NCBI GenBank assembly: GCA_965649825.1
Contig: OZ287705.1
Span: 830,314-894,313, forward strand
DNA from: Penicillus capitatus
Lineage: Eukaryota > Plantae > Chlorophyta
DNA: 64,000 nt
Direction: 5' to 3'
Shown: in pieces, positions 3,533 through 64,000 of the stretch
Position numbering within the stretch: the stretch's first letter is position 1
Layout of the letters: every line of letters begins with the position of its first letter
The notes under the pieces: generated by a model
Seen by the model: the letters and a program-made list of their open reading frames with translations, nothing else
What the model was told of the DNA's origin: nothing
Databases searched by the model: none
Program-made: the position numbers and the translations under genes

Positions 3533-4257
3533 CTATCCACCTGTTATCCCATGTTCTTCTCTCGAATTGGAGTTTTCAGTTTTGTCGCTGTCGAGATTTC
3601 CTGCACGCACTGTGACTCTGTCATCTAGTTCATCTTTTCTGCTTTCATGCACCTTGTCCGACGATGTATTCGATGACAACAGAAATAACTGTGTAATCCA
3701 TCAACAATGAACTTTAAATGCGCGTTTAAGCAATGTGTTGGCTGATGGGTGTCAAGATCTTTATTTAAAGTGTTCATCATAAACCTGAGAAACTTCCACT
3801 GTTTTGCCTGTTCAAGCGGCATTTCGTCGCTTAATGTATGACCAAATGTAGAGTAGAAACGGTCTGGGAATGGCACGGTGGCTGCTCAAGGTAAAATCGT
3901 AATATACACCGGTATCTCTCGTCCATTTCCCTGATCATCGTCTGCAGACGCCACAGCAATACATAATGACATCCGTACTCGAGATCGATCATCATTCCCA
4001 AACTAGTTAGACTAGAGCCAATCTTCGTTACTCGGGAAAGAACCACAATATCTGCAATTGGCCTACGTTGGTGTGCCACCACCACCACTAAGAAACCCCC
4101 ATCACGTGCAACAAGGAAAAGATATACAGATGCATGTCACTTTAAGTAGGCGAACACGAATCACACCGCCGTCGGGCAGTGCGATTCCAATTCTTCTGTT
4201 GTCGGGCAGATAACACTTAGTGATTAGTGAGTGACTGACAGACTGACAGACTGACAT
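3533..4257 (-). CDS. Possible cryptic multi-exon gene, unresolved
   Basis: Protein-like segments (DRFYSTFGHTLSDEMPLEQAKQWKFL; acidic tail ending GITGG*) with short GT-AG intron candidates. No consistent full model was obtained. Confidence 0.3.
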
Positions 4258-4466
4258 AAAAAATAGAGGATGTCCCAAATACAGAATGATTGGGATGAAA
4301 GGGTTTGTCTGACAGAGGAGAGAAAGACCTTTTCATTCCAAACATGTTGGTCATCATCAGCCACAGAGAACCAGACCCTGAAGATGCTGACTGAGATTAA
4401 GAAATTCGAAGTCTAAAGAAAAAAATGGCACTAAAGAAATCTAATCCTACACGCTCTCACAATACT

Positions 4467-6837
4467 CTAATGAAACAAATTTTGTGATGCATCGAAGCCT
4501 AGAGGTAAGTGGAAGGGCTGCACCAAAACATCTTCGGCATCGACGGACGGGCCTAGCTCTGACAAGACAGGAATGACTCCTGTGCCTCCCCTTTGCGTTC
4601 TCTCAAGGTCAAAGGTTAGGGGACCTTCTCTTTGCTTCGAACGGTTGACGTCTCTACTAAAATGCATCGTCTGTACAGGTATGGCTGAATTCGATTGAGA
4701 ATGGCACGGATAGGTTGAGGGGTGCAGAACCACATTCGCCATGTGTCCTGCGTGCCACGTGTTATTTTGGTGGCCAGCATCTTGTTCTTCTTGAAATGCA
4801 AAACCGTCCCCGTCTGTACCGTGAAGTGCTGCTGTAAAGGCACCATGATGCGTCAAATTCTTCAAAGCTATGTCTTCATCGATCATCATTGCACCATTAG
4901 GATCAGAGTCATGAACATTACTGCAGTACAAGGAAACATGACCCTGCTTTCTCTTCACAGTCGCAGTATTTGTTAAGCATTCGCACCTTTGAGGATTGAG
5001 ACCCACATGCAGTCCAGAACTGAGAATGTACGCCAAATTCTCCGATCTGAGGTTGCCGGAAATTGCATTTTGTAGAAGCCAGGAAGGCGGTTCTCCTTTG
5101 TACCCCATTTGCTTCCACACCTTCAGCAACTTTGAAATCTGTCTTGATGGCCAGCGAGTTATTCCATTCCTCCGACATGCTCTTTTCAAAGTGGTTGGAC
5201 AAATGCCTAACCGGCGTGCTGCGTCTTTCAGTCCATGTCCAAAATGTGCCTCGAGATCTCGATAGGTCAGCCTTTTGCCTGCTCCTCCACCTAAACGGTT
5301 TTCCTTCTTTTTCGCTTCGGATCCTTCTCCTTCGTCGTCGTTGTGTTTATGGTGTTCGTTGCAGTAATCGTCGCTGTTTTTGTCGTCATCCATTGTAAAC
5401 TTCATGTCTTCTTTAGGGGAATCGCTGTGCATGTCTTGATCAGCTTTTTGAGCGATTGGCAGGGATGCCCGACATACTCTGACAGCGTCTGTGGGAGTAG
5501 CGCTATTGTGCGAATGCGCTTCAGGAAATTGAATAGTGTTTGCAGAACTGCTGTCTGAAACACATTTTGAGATTTCTGTCCCAAATCCAAGCGCGCCGTC
5601 TATACTCATTGAGTTGTTGACCACGTGGCTACAATAACAATCCCCACCCACCGTATGAGCAACAGAAGACAGAACTGCACAGTGGGTACCTGCTTTGCCG
5701 TTGAAAGACCGTGTACCCTTCATTGAAACGTCCATGAATTGACTGCTCTTCATTCGTCAGTAAGTCCATCCCAATATTCATCAAAAAATCAGAAACTTGT
5801 CTGAAACCTGCATCCACAGATACACTCCCTGTCGACTGCAGGAGAATGCATGGTACAGCATTGATGGACCTGTTTGCATAGCCCTCCCGAGAATGTGCTG
5901 CTTAGAAATGTCTTGTTCGTCTGGATGTTTTTTTGAAAAACCAGAGTCTGCTATGTTGTTGAATGGAACAGAGCAGACCTCCACTGGCCACTTCCGCAGT
6001 CCCAGCTTCCAACTGTCCATTCGCACATTTGCTGTTCTCAATCGCATATAGTCCATTGCTTCTGTAAACAGCTGAATGATGTTTGCGAATTCCACCGATT
6101 TGTCATGATGCGATAACTCCACCACAGCCAAGGCTTTTGGATTATCTCCATCAAAAATTGGAAAGATCAGCGTCGAATGCATTCGACAAAGCTGCGCTTC
6201 ATTAATCCTTAAGTATGCATTCTTATCATACTGTTGAATATCTAAGCACAACTCAGGCTACATCCAAAACAGAACATATCCTATATAGATGGGATCCCCG
6301 CTAATAGGGACCACACTTGTCCATAGTGATAGACACGACCAACAGCACCCATAGAATCTCCATAGGATGGATCAGCATCAAATCTGTATTTGCATGAAAT
6401 GCAGCGAAACAGCGCCATCAAATCCCCAACTCCCGAGATGGAAAAAGGGAGACCCTATCGACTAAGCGATAACGCAACGCCTATTGAATAATGGAAACGC
6501 ATTACCTCTGTCGACAACAACACCCTCCCTCGAGAACAGAGTTCTGGCATCCATATCTGCGACAGCAAAACACCGGTCGGATGTGCGACGGATATTCGAG
6601 GCAAGGGGTCCACTCGTCTGACCCTCAATGTGGACCCGGTCGGTCGGCGCGCCCTTTGAAAGCCGACAGGATGTGGATATGACGTACTTGAATAAGTGCC
6701 CCTGCTTTTGACGACGAGAGTCCGTTGGAAAGTCGCTGAATTGCCTTCTCGAGTCGTTTTGTAAAACCAAGCATGTCATTATTGCCGCTGCTGTTTCTGA
6801 CACAGCTCGTGTCCGTCGGTGGAAAAGAGTGTTTCAT
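4467..6837 (-). CDS. NIT2/NIN-like transcription factor (GAF-like domain + RWP-RK)
   Basis: LTYRDLEAHFGHGLKDAARRLGICPTTLKRACRRNGITRWPSRQI is an RWP-RK domain. PELCLDIQQYDKNAYLRINEAQ...LIFPIFD...LAVVEL matches the NLP GAF region. The start (MKHSFPP, 6837) is inferred. Confidence 0.85.
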
Positions 6838-8072: not shown

Positions 8073-9989
8073 ATGGCAGAGAATAGCGTTATCGAGAGGG
8101 CCATCCTAGAGACGCTTCACGAAAATGGCATCATTGAAGATACGAATCAGCTGGCAACCTCTCTTGACAAAGAGCACAACGACGTGGTGGGATCCATGAA
8201 GAGTCTTCAGTCCTCTGAAATGATTCTCGTCGAGGCGCGTCAACTGCTTCTCTCTGCCCTTTTGTTAAATGTGAAAGGGATCAGGATATCGATCATTTTG
8301 AGTATATGCTGACCGATGAAGCTAAAGCATACTTACAGATAGGGTCCCCAGAGGCACAGCTCTTTTACGCTATTCCAGAGGAAGGCATTTCCTTGGCACA
8401 ACTCAAAGTTCACAATTCTCACTCTTTTATGGATCATGAGATGCTTTCTTGTCAGACAACGATGGATGCAGCTGTGACAGGAATTGGATTCAACCAAGCC
8501 ATGGCGCAAAAATGGGTCGAGGTGAAGAAAGACAAAGGCACTTCATTGATCTTTCGAAAAGTTGTCAGATTGAGATAGCGCAATGAAATAAGGAATGCAT
8601 TCGTCGATGCAGGTTGAGGCGATCGTGGACAGTGTGAAGGAATGGCTACAGCTTGTGTCCGATGGGAAGGAGATTCCACAGAAAGATGCGACTTTACTAC
8701 AAAAGAAGCGCAAACTTATTACGCCAAGCACATGGAAGACATACAGGTTGCAAAAGGGACCCAAATTTGCATTGACACGATCAAAACAAGCCACGGATCT
8801 CACACATGAAATGCTGCTAAAGTAAGGCTTTCCCTTAGCAAACCCTTCTGTCTGAGTGCTTTGGTAATTGCAGAGGGACATGGAAAGATCAGTCCTTTAA
8901 GGCTTACAACTTCAATGCATTGGGGTTACCCTACCAGGGTGGCTGTCTCCACCCACTACTCAAGGTAACGATGACGATTCCGTTCGTCCTTCTTGAATAT
9001 GGATGCGTGTGGACATCGCGACAGGTCCGGAGTCAATTTCGCAAGATATTCACTCAAATGGGGTTTGAAGAGATGCCTTCCAATGCATATGTGGAGAGCA
9101 GTTTCTGGAATTTTGATGCACTGTTCCAGCCACAGCAACATCCAGCACGCGATGCCCATGACACGTTCTTCTTGACAAAACCTGCTTCGTCCGGCGGATT
9201 CCCCGATGATTACCTCCAGCGTGTGAAAGAGACACATGAAAAAGGCGGATTTGATTCCATTGGGTATGTCATCCACGAATTCGGCGATGGTGTCGAGGTA
9301 CATTCAGGTATGGCTACGCCTGGAAGCTGGCAGAGGCTCAAAAGAATCTGCTGAGAACACACACAACCGCCGTGTCATCGCAGATGCTGTACAAACTGGC
9401 CCTGGAGGGCTTTAAACCGACCCGGTACTTCTCAGTGGACAGAGTCTTTCGGAATGAAGCCATTGATCGAACACATCTAGCAGAGTTCCATCAAATTGAA
9501 GGTATCTCTTCTGCAGAATGTTGGACAGTTCTTGAAGAATCGGGAGATGTCGTCATGTAGGCCTTGTTTGCGACAGAGGTCTGACTTTGGGTGACTTGAT
9601 GGGCACGCTAAGATTGTTCTTCGATCGATTGGGTTTGAAGAAACTCAGATTTAAACCAGCCTTCAATCCTTATACTGAACCAAGTATGGAAATCTTCAGT
9701 TACTCGGAGCAGCTCAAGAAGTGGATGGAAGTCGGTAACTCAGGTATCATCAGCTTATCATCTCATGCATTCCATCCTTTCATGAAATGCTTGCGATGCA
9801 GGGATGTTTCGTCCAGAAATGCTTCGCCCTATGGGTTTGCCTGAAGACGTGAATGTCATTGCATGGGGTCTGAGTTTAGAGCGGCCGACGATGATTCTCT
9901 ACGGAATCGACAACATTCGTGACCTGTTTGGACACAATGTCAGTCTTGCGATGGTGAAGAATAATCCTATTTGCCGACTTGGCATGTGA
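8073..9989 (+). CDS. FARSA: Phenylalanyl-tRNA synthetase alpha subunit, cytosolic
   Basis: [59 protein letters not shown] and [11 protein letters not shown]; eight short introns, the first GC-AG. Confidence 0.97.
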
Positions 9990-10077
9990 AAGAACAACAA
10001 GTACTTAGAAATCGAAATCGATCAATTGATAGGTCCTTTCCTCGTACTACTGATCGATCTCACATTTCAATCGTTTA

Positions 10078-13000
10078 TCACTGCAATGCTGTAAAGACAT
10101 CATTGCCTTCAAGAGCTTCAGCGTAAAGCGATTTCTGCTTAGGTGTGTTTGCTGCACGCTCGTTCGATAGCAGTGTCATGACAGCACCCACAATACTGCC
10201 CCCATGCTCAAAGATATCGATATGGGGTTCACGGATCTGCCAAGGATGTGCATGTACAGTGAATCGACGATGATGATATGTATGACATACCTTCTTCTCC
10301 AAGAGCGATTGCAATTCAGATCGAAGAGCCACAATGACTTCGGCGACTTCGGGATCCGCGTTGAAGAGGAATTTTCCGTTTAGTATAGAGAAATTCCCTG
10401 GATTCTTCGAATCGATCTCCACATCTCCTCCAAACAACAGCAACGCCAAATCCGTTACCATTGTCGAATTTCTAAACATGATGCCGCCTGTCTGCACTTT
10501 GTCTGTGTAAACAAGCCATCGGTGCGGGAAATAATTGGCCGTATTGTTCACAGAGAACATATGAGGCCTTACGGTGCCGTCCTCCAGTGTCAGAAAGGAT
10601 GGTTTCTTGCCGTCGGAGACAATAGCGGCGACACTTGGGAACATTCCAGAACACAGGACCGCACGCAGCAGTTCTAGAGTAGCTGAATTCATACTGTGTT
10701 CATAGATGGCATCTTCCAGAGCATAAAAACTGTATCTCCCAGAAGGGGATCTTGTACGATTTCGATGGGCGTCTTCTGAGATTTTTAGAAATCCAATGTT
10801 GGCCAGGAGTTCTGCAAAGTGTAATCGCATTTTGTCCATCTGATCAAAGCTCTGTGCGATAAAGAAATTCTCTCGACAGTATGTCCACTTGGCTTCCGGT
10901 CCGTAGTTTCGTGCTTCCTTGTAGCCTTCAAATGCACGGAGCAGTGCAATGTGGTCTGAACATGTGTCGGCTGCCAGATTTAGTTTAATGGAATCCACTT
11001 CCTTGCGCATGGCCACAGGTCTCTGAAAAGGATCTTTGACAGTGGAGGCTGCAGCCAATGTCAAGCAAGGATCCAAGCAGCCAAAGATAGCACCCATCAG
11101 AATCATCTTTCCAATGGACGGTTCCACAGGAATATGTGCAAGATGTCTGCCTAATGGCGTCAATTCTTGCTTGGCATCGATCGCCCCAATAAGCCGCAGT
11201 TGCATCATGGCGTTGTGCACTGTTTGAGGGGACGGTGGATTGATGGCGCCTGCCATGAATTCCTGCATGCTCCCAAGTCCCAAACTCTTAATTTGCAAGC
11301 ACAGTTCTGCCAGTGGTGTTCTCATGATCTCAGGAAGCTGGTGATCCAAGAAACACTGTTCATACATTCCCCTTGGAAAGAGGTGATATACATTCCCTGG
11401 CTGAACACGACCGGCTCTGCCCTTTCTCTGAGTACAGGAAGCTTTCGATATCCATGTTGGAAACAGACAGGCGATCTTGTTCAGTGCATCATAGGATTTC
11501 TCTTTGGCTTTTCCTGCGTTCACAACATACACAATGTCGTTGATTGTGATGGAAGTCTCTGCAATGTTCGTAGCAAGCACCACCTTCCTACAGGTTCCAT
11601 CAGTAACATACCGCGGATGCATGGTGACAGGGGCACCTGATACCGGGATCCGGTGTCTTGAATATTTCTTCCTGGCTGACAGATTGAAGAGTGCTGTGCA
11701 GAGGAAGAAGTTTAACCAATGCCGGATTGCCAACAACACTATTGGAGCTGAGTAACTCCGTCATCGTCTGAATATCTTCCCAACTCGTCAAGAAAACGAG
11801 CACGCCTCCTGGTGGTTCATGATTGCAAATCTGTTCGATGATTGCTTCGATCAAGCCATAGTGTAACTGCAGGTCGTGAGTATATGTCACACACCAGACA
11901 AGGCATGCAGGCATACCTTTTCATTTGCACACGACGCCCATGTTCGAATAGAGGAGAACGTGCTCTCTCGGTATCCAATGAAGTCCGATTTTTTTGGAAT
12001 GTAATCAAGCATTGCCGGATTTTCAGTCAGTGACTTCGCCTTCTGATACCACTGCAATTTTCTGTCTTTGTGTCGATCGGATGCAGAAATCATATAGCCT
12101 AAAACAACAACATCCGTCTCCTGGCCCAAAGAAGTCTCCAAGCACCTGTCGATTCAAGCACGTCCTCCAAAAAATGCTCTCGGACAGGATGCATGAATCC
12201 AGGAACGTGAACCGTGGGTGCATTGGAGAAGTACTCAGAGAATGTCTTTGCATCCAGTGTGGCACTCATTAGAATTACTCTCAGATCTGGTCTTTCGGAG
12301 AGAAGGTTGCGCAAAATGATCAGCAGAAAGTCTTCATTCATGCCACGTTCGTGAATCTCATCCACAATCACATGGCTCACATTCTCCAGTCCACGATCGT
12401 GAATGAGTTTTCTCAGCAGTATTCCAGACGTGCAGAACAGCAACCGTGTGTTGGGTGATTTTTGAGACATCATGCGAATCTGGAACCCCACCATATCTCC
12501 CAACATCTCTCCCCGTTCATCTGCGACGCGTTTAGAGACGGACATGGCCGATATGCGTCGAGGCTGTGTGCATATGATATTGGTACTCGCAATACTCCCA
12601 GAGGAAATGGCCTCTTCCAGAAGGAATTGAGGAAGCTGTGTTGTTTTGCCACATCCTGTCTCTCCAGAAACAATCACCACTTGATTGTTGCGAATGAGAT
12701 TCAGAAGCTGCGTCTTGTACTTCCACATCGGCAACGATCGTCGCATCTCATCCATTCTTTGCCCTGACTCTGTTGTCATGAAAAGACTGTGGCCCAGTCT
12801 CAATCTCTGTAATTCCTTTTCTGTGATATCATTCAGAGGTTGAGGCTTGTACTCAGATGCATCGACATCCGTGCTCGGGCGGGTGTATTCATTGTCATCA
12901 CTGTCTGCTTCATCCTCGGCATTAGATCCTATAACATCTTTAAAAGACATCAGATTTGATGGAAGGAAGAAGAAGTGCCGTTGAGTGCTGCTGGCGATTG

Positions 13001-13955
13001 GAATGTCGACGAGTCATATTTATCCTCCTCAGCTGCATACGATATCTCTTCTTTCATGTCGTCTAAAAGCAGTACAGTCCAAGAAACCAAACGTGGATGC
13101 ATAAGTGGGTGTACCTGGGTGTTCTACCCAGTCCTCTTGATATCTGCCCATGTCGATGGTATTCAAAGTGAGACGAACCACATTTAAGATGTCTTTATCC
13201 AATTCTAATTTGTGTCTTGTCTTTGTTCGTTTGTCAAACTCTGGACGATAACGAGCTAGAGGATATTTGCTGATCAACTGTGTTACCGATCCTTTGGCGC
13301 CATACTTTCTCCTGAATCACACACAAGCCACAAGATAATATCTCTGCCTACCAACAACAACTGAACCAGTGCAGCCCCATTTCTTTGCATGTTGCATCAA
13401 AGGTTGTGTTCGCTAGCTGATCAAATTGCTTTGGAACAACGATCTCCATGTCCTCGGACTGCATCAAGGTTTTATTGAGGTATTCTTTCAGTTTTAATCC
13501 CTGCTGCTTTGCTTTTGTCGTTGACTCAGTGAGCGAAAACAGATCATCTACACATAATGAGTGTGTGCAACAACTCTAAATCCATGGAGGCAGAATCAAA
13601 GCACTGACTTGATTTTGTGCTCGCAGCATTCTCATCATAGAGTGACAGATTCCAAGCATCATCTTCACCGGGCCGGGTGACGTCATGGTCCTCAAAAGAC
13701 GATCCACTGACGCGAGATTTCTTTGATAAATCACCGAACGCGGATTCGTAGAAGTCAAGGTCTTCTTCTTTGCCGTCTTGAGAAGACACAAGCCAACTTT
13801 CTATCCCTTTGCTACTCTTTTTCGGCCGTTGAGCTTTGCGTCTGTTGAGATCTTCTCACAGCAAAGAACAACATCGTAAGACAAGCAAAATACGATTCTG
13901 CATACCTTTCCATGGCTGTTGCTTCGAATATCGAGGCTGTAGCGAAGCTGGACAT
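10078..13955 (-). CDS. DEAH/RHA-family RNA helicase (DHX36/DHX57-like)
   Basis: [29 protein letters not shown] and HA2/OB-fold regions. The start is either MSSFATAS (13955) or MERR (13913). Confidence 0.93.
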
Positions 13956-13963
13956 GATAATGG

Positions 13964-14454
13964 ATGAAAGACAAGGTGATGGTGAAGGCCACTTACTTCC
14001 CTTACTCTTGGAAGCCAAATGTCGAATGGCTAGGGAGAAAAGATATCGATCCGGGCGTTGATGGGAGCATCCTGTATACATACACTGTTTACCCCGTTAG
14101 GAAGATAAGAAGAACCTGTCGGGAAGGCAACATGCTGAACCCTTGAGAGTAGGATCTCTAGACATAGGTGTCTGGCTGTGCTCTACCGCAACACACCAAC
14201 AAGTGTATGAACAGGGATCCGATCTGAAGATGGGGCGAGTCGCACATGAATACTGCTGGCGCACGTCTTTCCGACTTCCGACAGCGCAAGCATTCGATTT
14301 TTTTGATGGCATAGAAGACGCGAATCATCGACTACAATCATCAAGACATTACACTCTCGCAGAGCAAGATGACGTGACACAACATGATCGGACTCCACTT
14401 TCATTCCTTTCTGTTGCATTCTCTTCAGGAATGTCAATTGATCTCTGCTAGATA
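13964..14454 (+). CDS. Hypothetical small protein (multi-exon, ends uncertain)
   Basis: Two protein-like ORF pieces (KATYFPYSWKPNVEWLGRKDIDPG; AHEYCWRTSFRLPTAQAFDFFDGIEDA) fill the gap between the DExH start and the lipase stop. No family recognised. Confidence 0.35.
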
Positions 14455-14649
14455 AAAAATCTCGACTACAATGATTCAGACAGCAGGGTCCGTGGATAGA
14501 AGTGAAAACGAAATGCCAGATAGACTGCACGAAAGTGAGAGAAGTGTATCCACACCAACTCGTCCCCATATTGCATGAGAAGGAAAAAAACAGCAATCAC
14601 TTTCGTATTTGAGATTGATGACATCAGAGAGTGTATTTTGCGGTTTAGG

Positions 14650-16873
14650 TTAAGAACTGTTGTCTTCTTCCTTTTCTACTGTTTTGGACGATTGGATCTC
14701 TTTTGTTTTGGTGATTCGCATTGGACGTCCACGCATCTTGACATCTTTCTTGAAGAATTTGTCAACAGCGGCTTTCACGATCTCGTAGTAGTACGGTTGC
14801 ATATGCGTCCGAACACTCATTCCAGCAAAAGCCCTTGCGCGGATGACTTTTCCATCGTCTTTGAACTCGTCCTCGATGTTTTGCACATCGTCTGCGATAT
14901 TTCCAGACTGAAAGTTCTTCCCCTCGAGGGTCACCTCTCCGTTGATCTGAAGGAGCACTTCGTATTTCGTGTGCGAATAGATAATTGGTGGAAGGAAATG
15001 GACAAGATCGGTCGAGTTGACAACCCGGAGACTTTTGTCAACCGTCTGGTTGTAGTTTCGCACAAAGCCATCGTTCCCAACTCGCGGAGCTCCAAAGTTC
15101 ATCATTCCCACCTTCGGACCGACAAATACGTCTGTGTTGTCACGATGGATCCTCAAGATGTTCATAAACGACTTCAAGAACGACTTGTCCACGGGTACTC
15201 TAGAGAGACAGACGGTTTGAGATTATCGTCATCATCATTGAGAGAGAACAACGCACTTTCTGTTTGCGATTTCAAAGGCACAGAATGTGGCTAATGCGCC
15301 GCCCAGAGAATGACCTGTAACACATACAGTCCAATCCTCGTCCCAGTCCGTAATATCGTAGACGATTCTGAGAACGGATTCTCGAATAGAATCGTAGGCA
15401 TCTCTAAAGCCTTTGTGGACTTTGATGTCTTTGTCTAAAAGCTCCGTGGTGGGCTTCATGGCATAGTTTGTCGATAACTGAGAGGCTGTGAGCGGCACAG
15501 GCGTGAACGTGAGATCCGTAAGGATATCTTTTAGTCTATTGATTTCTGTTCCTCTGAATGCAACGATAACCACTTTGGCGTCGTTGTTGACATGGATCCA
15601 TGCTTGTGTGCCAGTTGTCTTGGCGTCAATAAAGGCCACCGGATTTGTGCTGATGAACCCAATATCTGTCATATTCGTGATGTCCTTCCAGTTTGTTTCA
15701 TCTTCGTCTGTCTCTTGTCTCTCCATCCACTTGCTACTGTCCTCTTCCAAGTCCATTTCGGACAGAGCGTCTGTGACGGACATAAATTTGGCAGTAAAGC
15801 ATACGCTGCCATGTTTGCCGTTGTCCTCGTTCTTATGTGTGAGATTGACCTCCATTTTCTGAGCGCAATGTTTTTTCAGTTTGGAAAGATCCAACACTGC
15901 TGTTCCGAGATGATCATCCTTGTCGATAGCGTTCATCATTGCACCCATACCTGTCCGCGTGTCTTTGTCCAAAACAGAGATAGTCAACTGGGCATCTGTA
16001 ATCGGCTCCAGTTGACGTTTTCTGAGGAGCAAATAGTGAGTCGAATCATTCCACACAGGACTCCCTGTATCGAATTTGGTTTCGCTTTTGGAGCATGATT
16101 CCCCTACTGAAAAGATGACGTAGGGATCACTATGTCCTTGGAACAATCCCTAGTTCCATGACAAAGTGTTTAGTGCATGTCGCAGATGGATGGGATGATA
16201 TCTCACATCAGAGTCTCTGAGGCCTTTTGCACTGTGCAGTTCGATCTTCAGTATACCCTCCAACGACTTGGTCAGCTCAGCCCTATGCAATGCATTCATG
16301 CATAAGTCACTAGACAGAAGCGACACGCGAACGCACATACCATTGGAAGTGTCGAATCTCGTTTTCCCGAACGGTTGTTTCGACGAGCCCGTCGACTTGT
16401 GCATTCTCGTAAGCCGAGAATGCGTAGTTTCCCATATTAGAGATTCCAGCCATGAGGGTCGACCGAGCAGGGTCATACATGTTGATCGGCTTCAGATAAG
16501 GGAAAAGTTTGTTGAACGCATCGGCGACGGTCGTGTCTATAAACGTTTGAGATTGGGTCCTGCTGAACCCTGGCAGAAAACTCTAAACACGACAATTCGT
16601 CAGCTGGTTCGTGTCTCGAGAAAAAAAAGGTAACGATGTCGCGCGTTGGTGCTTTATTCGAACCGTCATTCACCAACAAGGCTCGAATGAGCGTTTTAGT
16701 TGCGCTTTTTACGCAGCACGGGTTTCGCGCGACCTTCGCCGTTGTGAGGGTTTTCACGATGCGTTTATCTACGCCGGGACGCGTGTTGGCAGCACAACGA
16801 GAAAACGCATTCGGGTCATCCGCATGTCACAGCACAGTGCTTAGCACACAGCACATACCTTGAGGCCTTCCAT
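14650..16873 (-). CDS. C2-domain + class 3 lipase (triacylglycerol/galactolipase-like)
   Basis: C2 (LKIELHSAKGLRDSD...DPYVIFSV...PVWN), lipase VAFRGTE, VTGHSLGGA (GxSxG), FGAPRVGN and RVVNSTDLV. The start is uncertain. Confidence 0.88.
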
Positions 16874-17160: not shown

Positions 17161-17800
17161 TCAGCTTCCCGGCGGAGTAGGTCTCTCTACAAGAACGACG
17201 ATCTTAAAAAACCGTCGAAGCTGCAACGCATATGCCTGATCAAGTTCGCGGTCTCTTCTGATGGCGGCTTTTATCTGTTGAAGCTTCTTGCCATATACCC
17301 TTTCCCTTTTGGAGACGATGAATCTCTCTTTGATATTGCAGCACGTTATCTTAACACAGTAAAGAAGTAAAGAATGAGAGATGGTTGTTTCGAATCAGGG
17401 TTGTTTGGCTATCGATCAAAGGCCATAGGACAGCAACAGCTTCCTGTCTTCCAATTTAGGATAAGACATGCTGCGATGGTCATTAACAGTGACGCCTTGT
17501 TCCCAACCTGAATAACGAATGCTTCTAGCAGAGCCAGCCTCTGGTCCCAATGGATGATCTACACGTGTGCATACAACAGCACGCTGAAAGACATGTCGTC
17601 CGGCAAGAAACAGGTGTGATATTCGAGATGCTGACCCATGTGATCACATATGATGCCTCCAAGAAACAGCAACCCTTTTCTGTGGAACGTCCATTGTGCG
17701 CCGAAAGATTACCTTTAAACTTCTTGTTCTTGTTTGTATCCGTTGTCCCTCTTGGAATGGAGTTCGCTGGCATCTTTACTTCCATCTGCCTTGTCTGCAT
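17161..17800 (-). CDS. Hypothetical multi-exon protein
   Basis: Exons MQTRQMEVK...KKFK, GLLFLGGIICDHMGQHLEYHTCFLP, RLALLEAFVIQ and NIKERFIVSKRERVYGKKLQQIKAAIRRDREL...PPGS*, linked by short GT-AG introns. One junction is unresolved. Confidence 0.5.
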
Positions 17801-25711: not shown

Positions 25712-28659
<2,948 letters not shown>

Positions 28660-62426: not shown

Positions 62427-62866
62427 GCTTATTCTTAGATGCCCGCTTAAGAGAATTAACACCAATGTCTCAAAAGATGCGGCAAATCAATTACAGTTAT
62501 TTGAATTTAGATGTCGACGAGAGAATCTGACTCATCTTCTATACTGCGAACTCTTCTGCGCACTTTCGCAGAGTTGCAGTAACATGTCTGCTTTCCACGT
62601 TCGCGTCAACATGGTGTTACAGCATTCTGTTGTGTAGGTCACGGAAGACGGAATGCCAATCTCTGGACGAAAAATTGTCCTCAGAGTCGCTGCCCGTGTC
62701 GGAAAGTGGCGGAATCCGCGTCCCAGATTTTAACATTCAAGAAAGAAATCGACCAAAGCTTTTGCGTGTTGTCGCAAAAAAGCATAACATTGTCAACACC
62801 AAGACGCTTGTCGCAGCATACAACTCCACGACGGATAAGAATGAGCGAAGTGTTCTCTTTGAATGG

Positions 62867-63013
62867 TGTCAGTGGACAGCTGTCCACCTTCGTGCAGCTG
62901 CCACGGGACGCGTCAAATGTCACATCGACGCGTATAAAGACCGAACATTACTTGTCAGAACAGTCTTTTAAGCTTTACGCCTTCGTCGTTAACCCGTCCT
63001 GACGAACACGACA
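62867..63013 (+). repeat. 5' LTR (147 bp)
   Basis: Identical to 63528-63674; TG...CA ends; TATAAA at 62933-62938; 16-bp palindrome at 62872-62887. Confidence 0.93.
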
Positions 63014-63025
63014 TGGTTTCGGAGC
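63014..63025 (+). promoter_or_regulatory. Primer-binding site (initiator tRNA-Met type)
   Basis: TGGTTTCGGAGC directly after the 5' LTR; the canonical tRNAi-Met PBS is TGGTATCAGAGC (10/12 identical). Confidence 0.8.
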
Positions 63026-63128
63026 GACAAAGATTCCGGCGATAGAATCCCGTCATCAAAGACTGAAGACTTTCCAAGACACGACCGTGGTGACAGCGTT
63101 TTACCTACCACCTGCAGTCTGTAGTTCG

Positions 63129-63212
63129 TTCCATCGTCCGAGCTGCTGTGTTTCAGTTCCACCGTCCGAGTTGCTGTGTTTCAGTTCCACCGTCCGAGTT
63201 GCTGCGTTTCAG
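63129..63212 (+). repeat. Three tandem 28-bp repeats inside the TRIM
   Basis: TTCCAYCGTCCGAGYTGCTGYGTTTCAG x3, head to tail with no spacers. Confidence 0.9.
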
Positions 63213-63425
63213 TTTCACGCTGCGATAAGCGTGCTGTTGCGCATTGTTGTGTTTACGTTCATTGTTACTTTGTCCGTGTTTACGTTTTCTATCTGGGTCA
63301 CCACGGACGTGTTGTCGCTGTGAAGTACGGTTCGAATTTCCAGAGTCGGCGCTGAAGTCTCAGAGACGTAAGAGCTACAAAGCTGCGGCGAATGGGCCGC
63401 AGAGGGAGAAGCCACGTGACGATGG

Positions 63426-63450
63426 CCCTGGTTCGACTCCTGGCCAGCCT
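63426..63450 (+). promoter_or_regulatory. tRNA T-arm / Pol III B-box-like motif inside the TRIM
   Basis: GGTTCGACTCC at 63430-63440 matches GGTTCGANTCC; flanks CCTGG/CCTGG form a 4/5 T-stem. Confidence 0.5.
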
Positions 63451-63509
63451 GATGACATCCCGACTATCGTGAAATGTGTTCCGTATACATTATTCGGAGT
63501 CTGCACAAC

Positions 63510-63523
63510 GGAAAGGGGGTGGG
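63510..63523 (+). promoter_or_regulatory. Polypurine tract
   Basis: GGAAAGGGGGTGGG, 4 nt before the 3' LTR. Confidence 0.8.
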
Positions 63524-63527
63524 CACA

Positions 63528-63674
63528 TGTCAGTGGACAGCTGTCCACCTTCGTGCAGCTGCCACGGGACGCGTCAAATGTCACATCGACGCGTATAAAG
63601 ACCGAACATTACTTGTCAGAACAGTCTTTTAAGCTTTACGCCTTCGTCGTTAACCCGTCCTGACGAACACGACA
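63528..63674 (+). repeat. 3' LTR (147 bp)
   Basis: Identical to the 5' LTR. Confidence 0.93.
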
Positions 63675-64000
63675 ATGGTTAAGCAAATATGGCGAAAGAA
63701 GCGAAGACTGCCTCACACCGAAGGTCGTCCTTGAGTATGCAGAATTGGCCAAAGTCTTCCATGCGTCCGAACAAGATGCGGACTTTCTGAGGGAGTTGGT
63801 GTATGCCCTCGCTTCTCGAATCCGTCCAGGCGAATTTCTTAACGAGAACGTCGCAAAGGCTCTTTTAAACGCACTCACCTGGGTGGATGCGACCGTCTAC
63901 GATGACCCCGCACAGCTGATTGTCCTTGCCAAAAAACTACTGTTTAGTTTGTCCTCAGATCTAAGACTAACGAAGCACAACTTTGCAAAATACGAAGCGA

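Follow-up and report, generated by a model that had tools for sequence, protein, structure and literature searches.

TRIM elements of plants were reportedly described by Witte et al. in 2001. Of the 48 genomes of plants and algae surveyed by Gao et al. (2016), 43 had annotated TRIMs, and the survey listed six TRIM subfamilies in Chlamydomonas reinhardtii and five in Volvox carteri; the features published for these elements are small size, a duplication of 4-6 bp and enrichment in genic regions (PMC4717578). [quoted passage not shown] Penelope-like elements are characterised by 5′ truncation, tandem or inverted partial copies, tails of 30-40 bp and a bias towards microsatellites (PMC8557442).

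Here we report an 808-bp element, found in a 64,000-nucleotide stretch of DNA (the window), which is very probably a recent and complete non-autonomous LTR retrotransposon of the TRIM type, inserted in a coding exon. The preliminary description of this locus knew of no TRIM family with this organisation described in chlorophytes. The premise that there is none was wrong, and chlorophyte novelty fails because TRIMs were already described in Chlamydomonas reinhardtii and Volvox carteri, as six and five subfamilies (PMC4717578). What we have found appears to be a new family of a known TRIM kind, behaving as expected; it has no sequence match in the collections searched, and was compared with the TRIMs of Gao et al. 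by description.

The element and its relatives in the same assembly (the window family) resemble TRIMs in being shorter than 1 kb, with short LTRs, a target-site duplication (TSD) within the 4-6-bp range, a putative primer-binding site (PBS) and a polypurine tract (PPT) placed around a non-coding interior, multiple copies and a location in or near genes. Unlike the PBS consensus of the usual plant TRIMs, that of the window family seems not to be of the initiator-Met type. The family is also set apart from known TRIMs by an interior (97-99% identical between copies) that is better conserved than the LTRs (81-97%), and by a 28-bp repeat of variable copy number. Retrozymes, which are non-autonomous LTR elements of plants with hammerhead ribozymes, are similar in being 600-1000 nt long and non-coding with a 4-bp TSD, a PBS (putative in the window family) and a PPT; unlike in retrozymes, no hammerhead was detected in the LTRs of the window element. 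With MRC1 and Chlamys elements the family shares small size, lack of coding sequence, recent activity, terminal direct repeats and a green-algal setting, but those elements have pseudo-LTRs, truncation, tails and a microsatellite bias where the window family has a putative PBS, a PPT and a fixed TSD (PMC8557442). Cassandra, Helenus and Ajax, which are derived from small RNAs (PMC10886601), are likewise non-autonomous LTR elements of similar size; unlike these, the window element has no detectable 5S rRNA- or tRNA-like module.

Results

The window element lies on the forward strand, as do all of its features described here, and occupies 62867-63674. It is bounded by two direct repeats of 147 bp (62867-63013 and 63528-63674) that are 100% identical (chance expectation 0 matches); searching the window with 76 nt of the repeat gave exactly two occurrences, against none in 100 shuffled versions. 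Each repeat starts with TGTCAG and finishes with CGACA, thus having ends of the TG...CA type, and these boundaries are the same in five copies of the element; we refer to the repeats as the 5′ LTR and the 3′ LTR. The element is flanked by a duplicated target site, ATGG, at 62863-62866 on the left and 63675-63678 on the right. Both LTRs carry a perfect 16-nt palindrome, GTGGACAGCTGTCCAC, near their start (62872-62887 in the 5′ LTR) and a TATAAA (62934-62939 and 63595-63600).

Directly 3′ of the 5′ LTR is a PBS-like sequence, TGGTTTCGGAGC (63014-63025), which is invariant in 5/5 full-length copies, the invariance of this region among the five extending through GACAAAGATTCC. At the other end of the interior a polypurine tract, GGAAAGGGGGTGGG (63510-63523), also invariant in 5/5 copies, is separated from the 3′ LTR by 4 nt (CACA). 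The interior as a whole measures 514 bp (63014-63527), and includes a 28-bp tandem repeat, GTTCCACCGTCCGAGTTGCTGTGTTTCA, for which repeat analysis gave 3.2 units in the window copy (63128-63218). Identical 147-bp LTRs (TGTC...GACA), an ATGG duplication, a primer site adjoining the 5′ LTR, a PPT, a TATAAA in the LTR and a 514-bp non-coding interior had all been listed in the preliminary description, and each of these was borne out.

No Pfam match was obtained for the interior or for its ORFs, which reach 139 aa, and an Rfam scan of 62700-63800 on both strands, at E<=10 with permissive filters, gave no match to a hammerhead, 5S rRNA, tRNA or any other family. Eight ORFs, taken from their longest start and contained in the element at least in part (some internal, others extending into an LTR or a little beyond it), were looked up exactly in the protein collection, and none was present. 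Comparison of the family copies showed that variable sites in the longest interior ORF are spread 4/5/4 across the three codon positions, and that indels, together with the 28-bp repeat, disrupt the interior reading frames from copy to copy; the interior is therefore non-coding. A strongly structured interior RNA was also considered and rejected, as the interior folds no better than shuffled sequence (z=+0.63). The interior does contain a string resembling a tRNA T-loop, GGTTCGACTCC (63434-63444), which is altered (GGCTCGA) in 3/5 copies and has no backing from ARAGORN or Rfam.

The element interrupts what reads as a coding exon on the same strand. The upstream part of this exon (62638-62866) would encode an ARM-like N-terminal region, with a weak match to ARM_5, and follows a putative splice acceptor predicted from the DNA alone (tgtgtag followed by G, 62637/62638). 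The downstream part (63679-64000) continues past the window end, and a gene caller's truncated product, P0002, starts within it at 63799. Joining the flanks without the element, with an expected empty-site junction of ...TTTGAATGG running directly into TTAAGC..., restores a continuous open frame of 412 aa in L002, a locus which reaches beyond the window end on the same contig. Downstream of P0002 in L002, and on the same strand, are ORFs with NACHT and many HEAT/PDS5-type repeats; the interrupted gene thus appears to encode a NACHT/HEAT (NLR-like) protein with an ARM-like N-terminus.

A homologue of this gene, P0001 (L001, ENA ERZ26696514), is found on a 1.15-Mb contig from a related organism. 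Its 266-aa ORF shows 69% amino-acid identity to the joined flanks, gap-free through the insertion point, and the DNA of its locus, aligned over 523 bp at 76% identity, has no element at the exact point where ATGG is duplicated in the window. As the neighbours of P0001 differ from those in the window, P0001 may be a paralogue and not an orthologue. In the window copy, translation running on from the exon would reach a stop codon 34 codons into the LTR, so that the gene is interrupted by the insertion, barring use of a start further downstream. The insertion into a coding exon with an intact host frame, as initially proposed for this locus, is upheld by the 412 open codons and by the uninterrupted P0001 at the same site.

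Further copies were sought with the translated frames of the element as protein query against a gene-call collection, which yielded four ORFs, followed by BLASTN and alignment. Each of these ORFs comes from a contig of its own, distinct from that of the window, in the same ENA assembly (ERZ25074695, in which the window contig is ctg340175_43x_l, 274 kb). With the window copy (62867-63674, +; 808 bp, TSD ATGG, LTR-LTR identity 100%) the full-length copies are those of L003 (9711-10452, +; 742 bp, TSD ATGT, 89.4%), L004 (9421-10202, +; 782 bp, TSD GCGT, 99.3% with 1 mismatch), L005 (9513-10300, -; 788 bp, TSD GCGG, 100%) and L006 (9373-10300, -; 928 bp, TSD ACAG, 100%). The TGTCAG...CGACA ends are common to all five copies; their flanks are unrelated, and the targets are unrelated, non-repetitive sequence. 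There is also a solo LTR of 165 bp with a TSD of its own, ACGG, located at 16550-16714 of L002 on the window contig, 6.7 kb past the window end, and 82% identical to the window LTR. An older LTR remnant is present in L005. Relative to the window LTR, a 26-bp segment of the solo LTR between ACGCGTC and GACGCGT is inverted; this solo LTR represents a related subfamily.

Three more ORF fragments of the family (P0008, P0009 and P0011) came from a full HMMER scan of 1.84 billion representative proteins; their contigs, again different ones, measure 777, 13 and 954 kb. These ORF fragments would mark three further copies, which takes the family from a minimum of five full copies to a probable eight members or more. 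Searches with a DNA pattern from the LTR core gave 0 matches in JGI metagenomes and IMG/VR, and a pattern spanning the LTR-end/PBS junction gave 0 matches in JGI metagenomes, GTDB genomes and IMG/VR.

Several of the loci have features of their own. On its 12.9-kb contig, P0009 reads from a family LTR into a flank identical to that of L004, 108 bp further left (~9312 vs 9421); it marks another insertion, independent of the first, into an allelic or paralogous version of the L004 region. Between 14000 and 19500 both strands of L004 also have overlapping open frames of great length (up to ~1800 codons), with no Pfam match. The order of the trypsin and ankyrin genes in L003 recurs at an offset of ~13.4 kb (150-2040 vs 13605-15508, and 4045-4644 vs 17165-17716), as if the segment around the L003 copy had been duplicated in tandem. 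The L006 copy sits antisense inside a 368-aa open frame (8913-10906) with a coiled coil and a CCHC knuckle (weak Pfam match). This frame may belong to another element, as its gag-like or ORF1-like gene; neither RT nor integrase was found near it, and the weak CCHC knuckle was the only result of a Pfam scan of the long ORFs beside the other copies.

Within single elements the LTRs are identical in 3/5 copies and differ by one mismatch in 1/5, those of L003 being 89.4% identical; the family was thus mobile both in the recent and in the more distant past. For the window copy, zero differences in 147 bp bounds LTR divergence only to ~1% or less, a loose bound owing to the short LTR, so that a 'very recent' insertion is plausible and the dating is not tight; gene conversion between the LTRs could also hold them identical. 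As regards the very recent mobility that had been claimed for the element, recent activity of the family therefore stands, given the identical LTRs in 3/5 copies, and the age of the window copy is bounded only to ~1% divergence.

Between copies the interiors are 97-99% identical and the LTRs 81-97%. L003 has a replaced U3 segment, and L005 and L006 have identical LTRs, yet 9 sites of the interior and the number of repeat units distinguish them; across the copies the 28-bp repeat varies from 2 to ~7 units. This suggests, on small numbers, that LTRs and interiors have been exchanged between co-packaged RNAs.

The six TSDs (ATGG, ATGT, GCGT, GCGG, ACAG and ACGG) all fit RYRK. The probability that six random 4-mers from the window would have no more than two different bases at each of the four positions is ~9e-5, and we tentatively suggest that RYRK could represent a target preference of the integrase. 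TGTAA, which is a poly(A) signal of chlorophyte type, is present in the LTRs of 4/5 copies, and the window copy is without its G in both LTRs (62970-62985). In the host, only 2/17 long ORFs have TGTAA within 400 nt downstream, with no enrichment, and TGTAA as a host poly(A) signal was dropped as evidence.

The PBS consensus common to plant TRIMs is TGGTATCAGAGC, of the initiator type, from which TGGTTTCGGAGC differs at 2/12 positions. One of the two mismatches faces position 72 of the tRNA, where the PBS implies A72; the complete sequence implies a tRNA ending in ...GCUCCGAAACCA, that is, one with U1:A72 and discriminator A. In the initiator tRNAs of eukaryotes this pair is A1:U72, and for this reason the label 'tRNAi-Met-like' initially given to the PBS is probably wrong. 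ARAGORN detected no tRNA genes in the window or in the six loci.

No RT, integrase or gag was found by Pfam in the window or in ~104 kb from the other contigs and beyond the window end (~170 kb in total), nor did the pattern scans of JGI metagenomes, IMG/VR and GTDB genomes bring to light a partner with matching LTR ends or PBS. The preliminary description had put forward, as a check, that copies, solo LTRs and a gag-pol partner be looked for in the genome; four more full copies and one solo LTR were indeed found, and no gag-pol partner was present within the ~170 kb examined.

The window lies on a contig of eukaryotic nuclear DNA, in which introns are short and G+C is ~47%. Its FtsH-like gene (25903-28081, +) has a degenerate HEXXH motif (HEAST), and finds its best PDB match in Chlamydomonas Fhl2/Ctap6, from the chloroplast Ycf2-FtsHi import motor (E=3e-44, vs 1e-34 for generic AAA proteins); for the N-terminal, non-AAA part of the protein Fhl2/Ctap6 is the only PDB match. 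The presence of an orthologue of Chlamydomonas Fhl2 supports a host of the green lineage, and a chlorophyte host is plausible. The window also encodes an RWP-RK domain protein (4467-5753, -), in which RWPSRQ replaces RWPxRK, and other loci of the family carry Spond_N, trypsin and PKD-channel genes, which are compatible with a green-lineage host.

Discussion

The window family has short LTRs of the TG...CA type, a total length below ~1 kb (742-928 bp), distinct 4-bp TSDs, a PPT and no gag or pol. The exact LTR ends, the constant 4-bp length of the TSDs, the solo LTR, the invariant PBS-like sequence and PPT, and the lack of coding capacity are direct observations, from which, together with the general biology of LTR elements, we infer a mechanism of transposition. 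As a TRIM-type element it would make no protein of its own, and would be copied by the Gag, RT and integrase of an autonomous LTR retrotransposon in the same genome. Transcription would begin in the 5′ LTR, past its TATAAA, and terminate in the 3′ LTR, and the resulting RNA would be packaged by the Gag of the partner. A cellular tRNA, annealing at the TGG... site which adjoins the 5′ LTR, would prime minus-strand DNA; the purine tract by the 3′ LTR would prime the plus strand; and strand transfers would restore two identical LTRs. A DDE integrase would then insert the TG...CA-ended DNA, its 4-bp staggered cut giving rise to the ATGG duplication.

Given the history of MRC1 (PMC9940879, PMC8557442), it could be asked whether the window element is in fact a non-autonomous Penelope-like element of the Chlamys type, its 'LTRs' being pseudo-LTRs that arose via partial tandem insertion. 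The green lineage of the host and the tandem repeats of the interior, which are frequent in Chlamys elements, would suit such an origin. However, 5/5 copies are full-length with exact TG...CA ends and a constant 4-bp TSD, a TGG... PBS-like site adjoins the 5′ repeat and a purine tract adjoins the 3′ repeat, a solo repeat has a 4-bp TSD of its own, and the copies are without 5′ truncation, head-to-tail multimers, 30-40-bp tails or microsatellite targets; we consider a Penelope-like origin highly improbable. There is similarly very little chance that this is one of the specialised small LTR elements, a retrozyme or an element of the Cassandra/Helenus/Ajax type. The size range and the 4-bp TSD do resemble those of retrozymes (PMC5680766), and the T-loop-like GGTTCGACTCC in the interior might recall a tRNA module, but Rfam (62700-63800, E<=10) detected no hammerhead, 5S rRNA or tRNA, ARAGORN detected no tRNA, and the T-loop-like string is mutated to GGCTCGA in 3/5 copies. 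We exclude a retrozyme because no hammerhead motif was detected in 62700-63800, and Cassandra, Helenus and Ajax because no 5S or tRNA module was.

The insertion could also be old, with LTRs kept identical by gene conversion and a host 'exon' that is a pseudogene still open: short LTRs date poorly, NLR-like families tolerate dead copies, and the putative ATG region of the window gene is out of frame with respect to the P0001 start, as we read the alignment. Such an age is improbable when 412 codons remain open over the joined flanks, which is unlikely for an old disrupted gene, and when LTRs that are identical in 3/5 copies and one base off in 1/5 present the pattern of recent transposition, while those of L003 (89.4%) show that LTRs of this family do diverge over time. 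An assembly artefact, or a simple local duplication which is not mobile at all, might be suspected in a contig from a metagenome assembly; this is barely conceivable, as the same structure stands on at least five contigs with distinct flanks and different 4-bp TSDs, and is therefore not an artefact of assembly, and the homologous gene is without the element precisely at ATGG. A recent insertion of a complete TRIM-type element thus remains our preferred explanation of this locus.

The window element leaves the understanding of how TRIMs work unchanged. It does show, cleanly and in full, what a recently mobile TRIM family looks like in a green alga known from a metagenome, and is itself a candidate active element; the family offers an insertion that disrupts an exon of an NLR-like gene, a solo LTR, and subfamilies between which LTRs appear to have been exchanged. 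It can be used in the transposon annotation of algal metagenome-assembled genomes and is a possible marker of ongoing retrotransposition.

A more far-reaching proposal, which we think unlikely, is that the family forms an unusually tractable, currently active non-autonomous LTR system of an uncultured green alga, in which a persistent, conserved 0.5-kb interior is shuttled between divergent LTRs (probably by RT template switching), a non-initiator tRNA serves as primer, RYRK sites are targeted, and long ORFs are hit repeatedly. If this were the case, the family would be a recurrent source of gene knock-outs in natural populations, NLR-like genes included.
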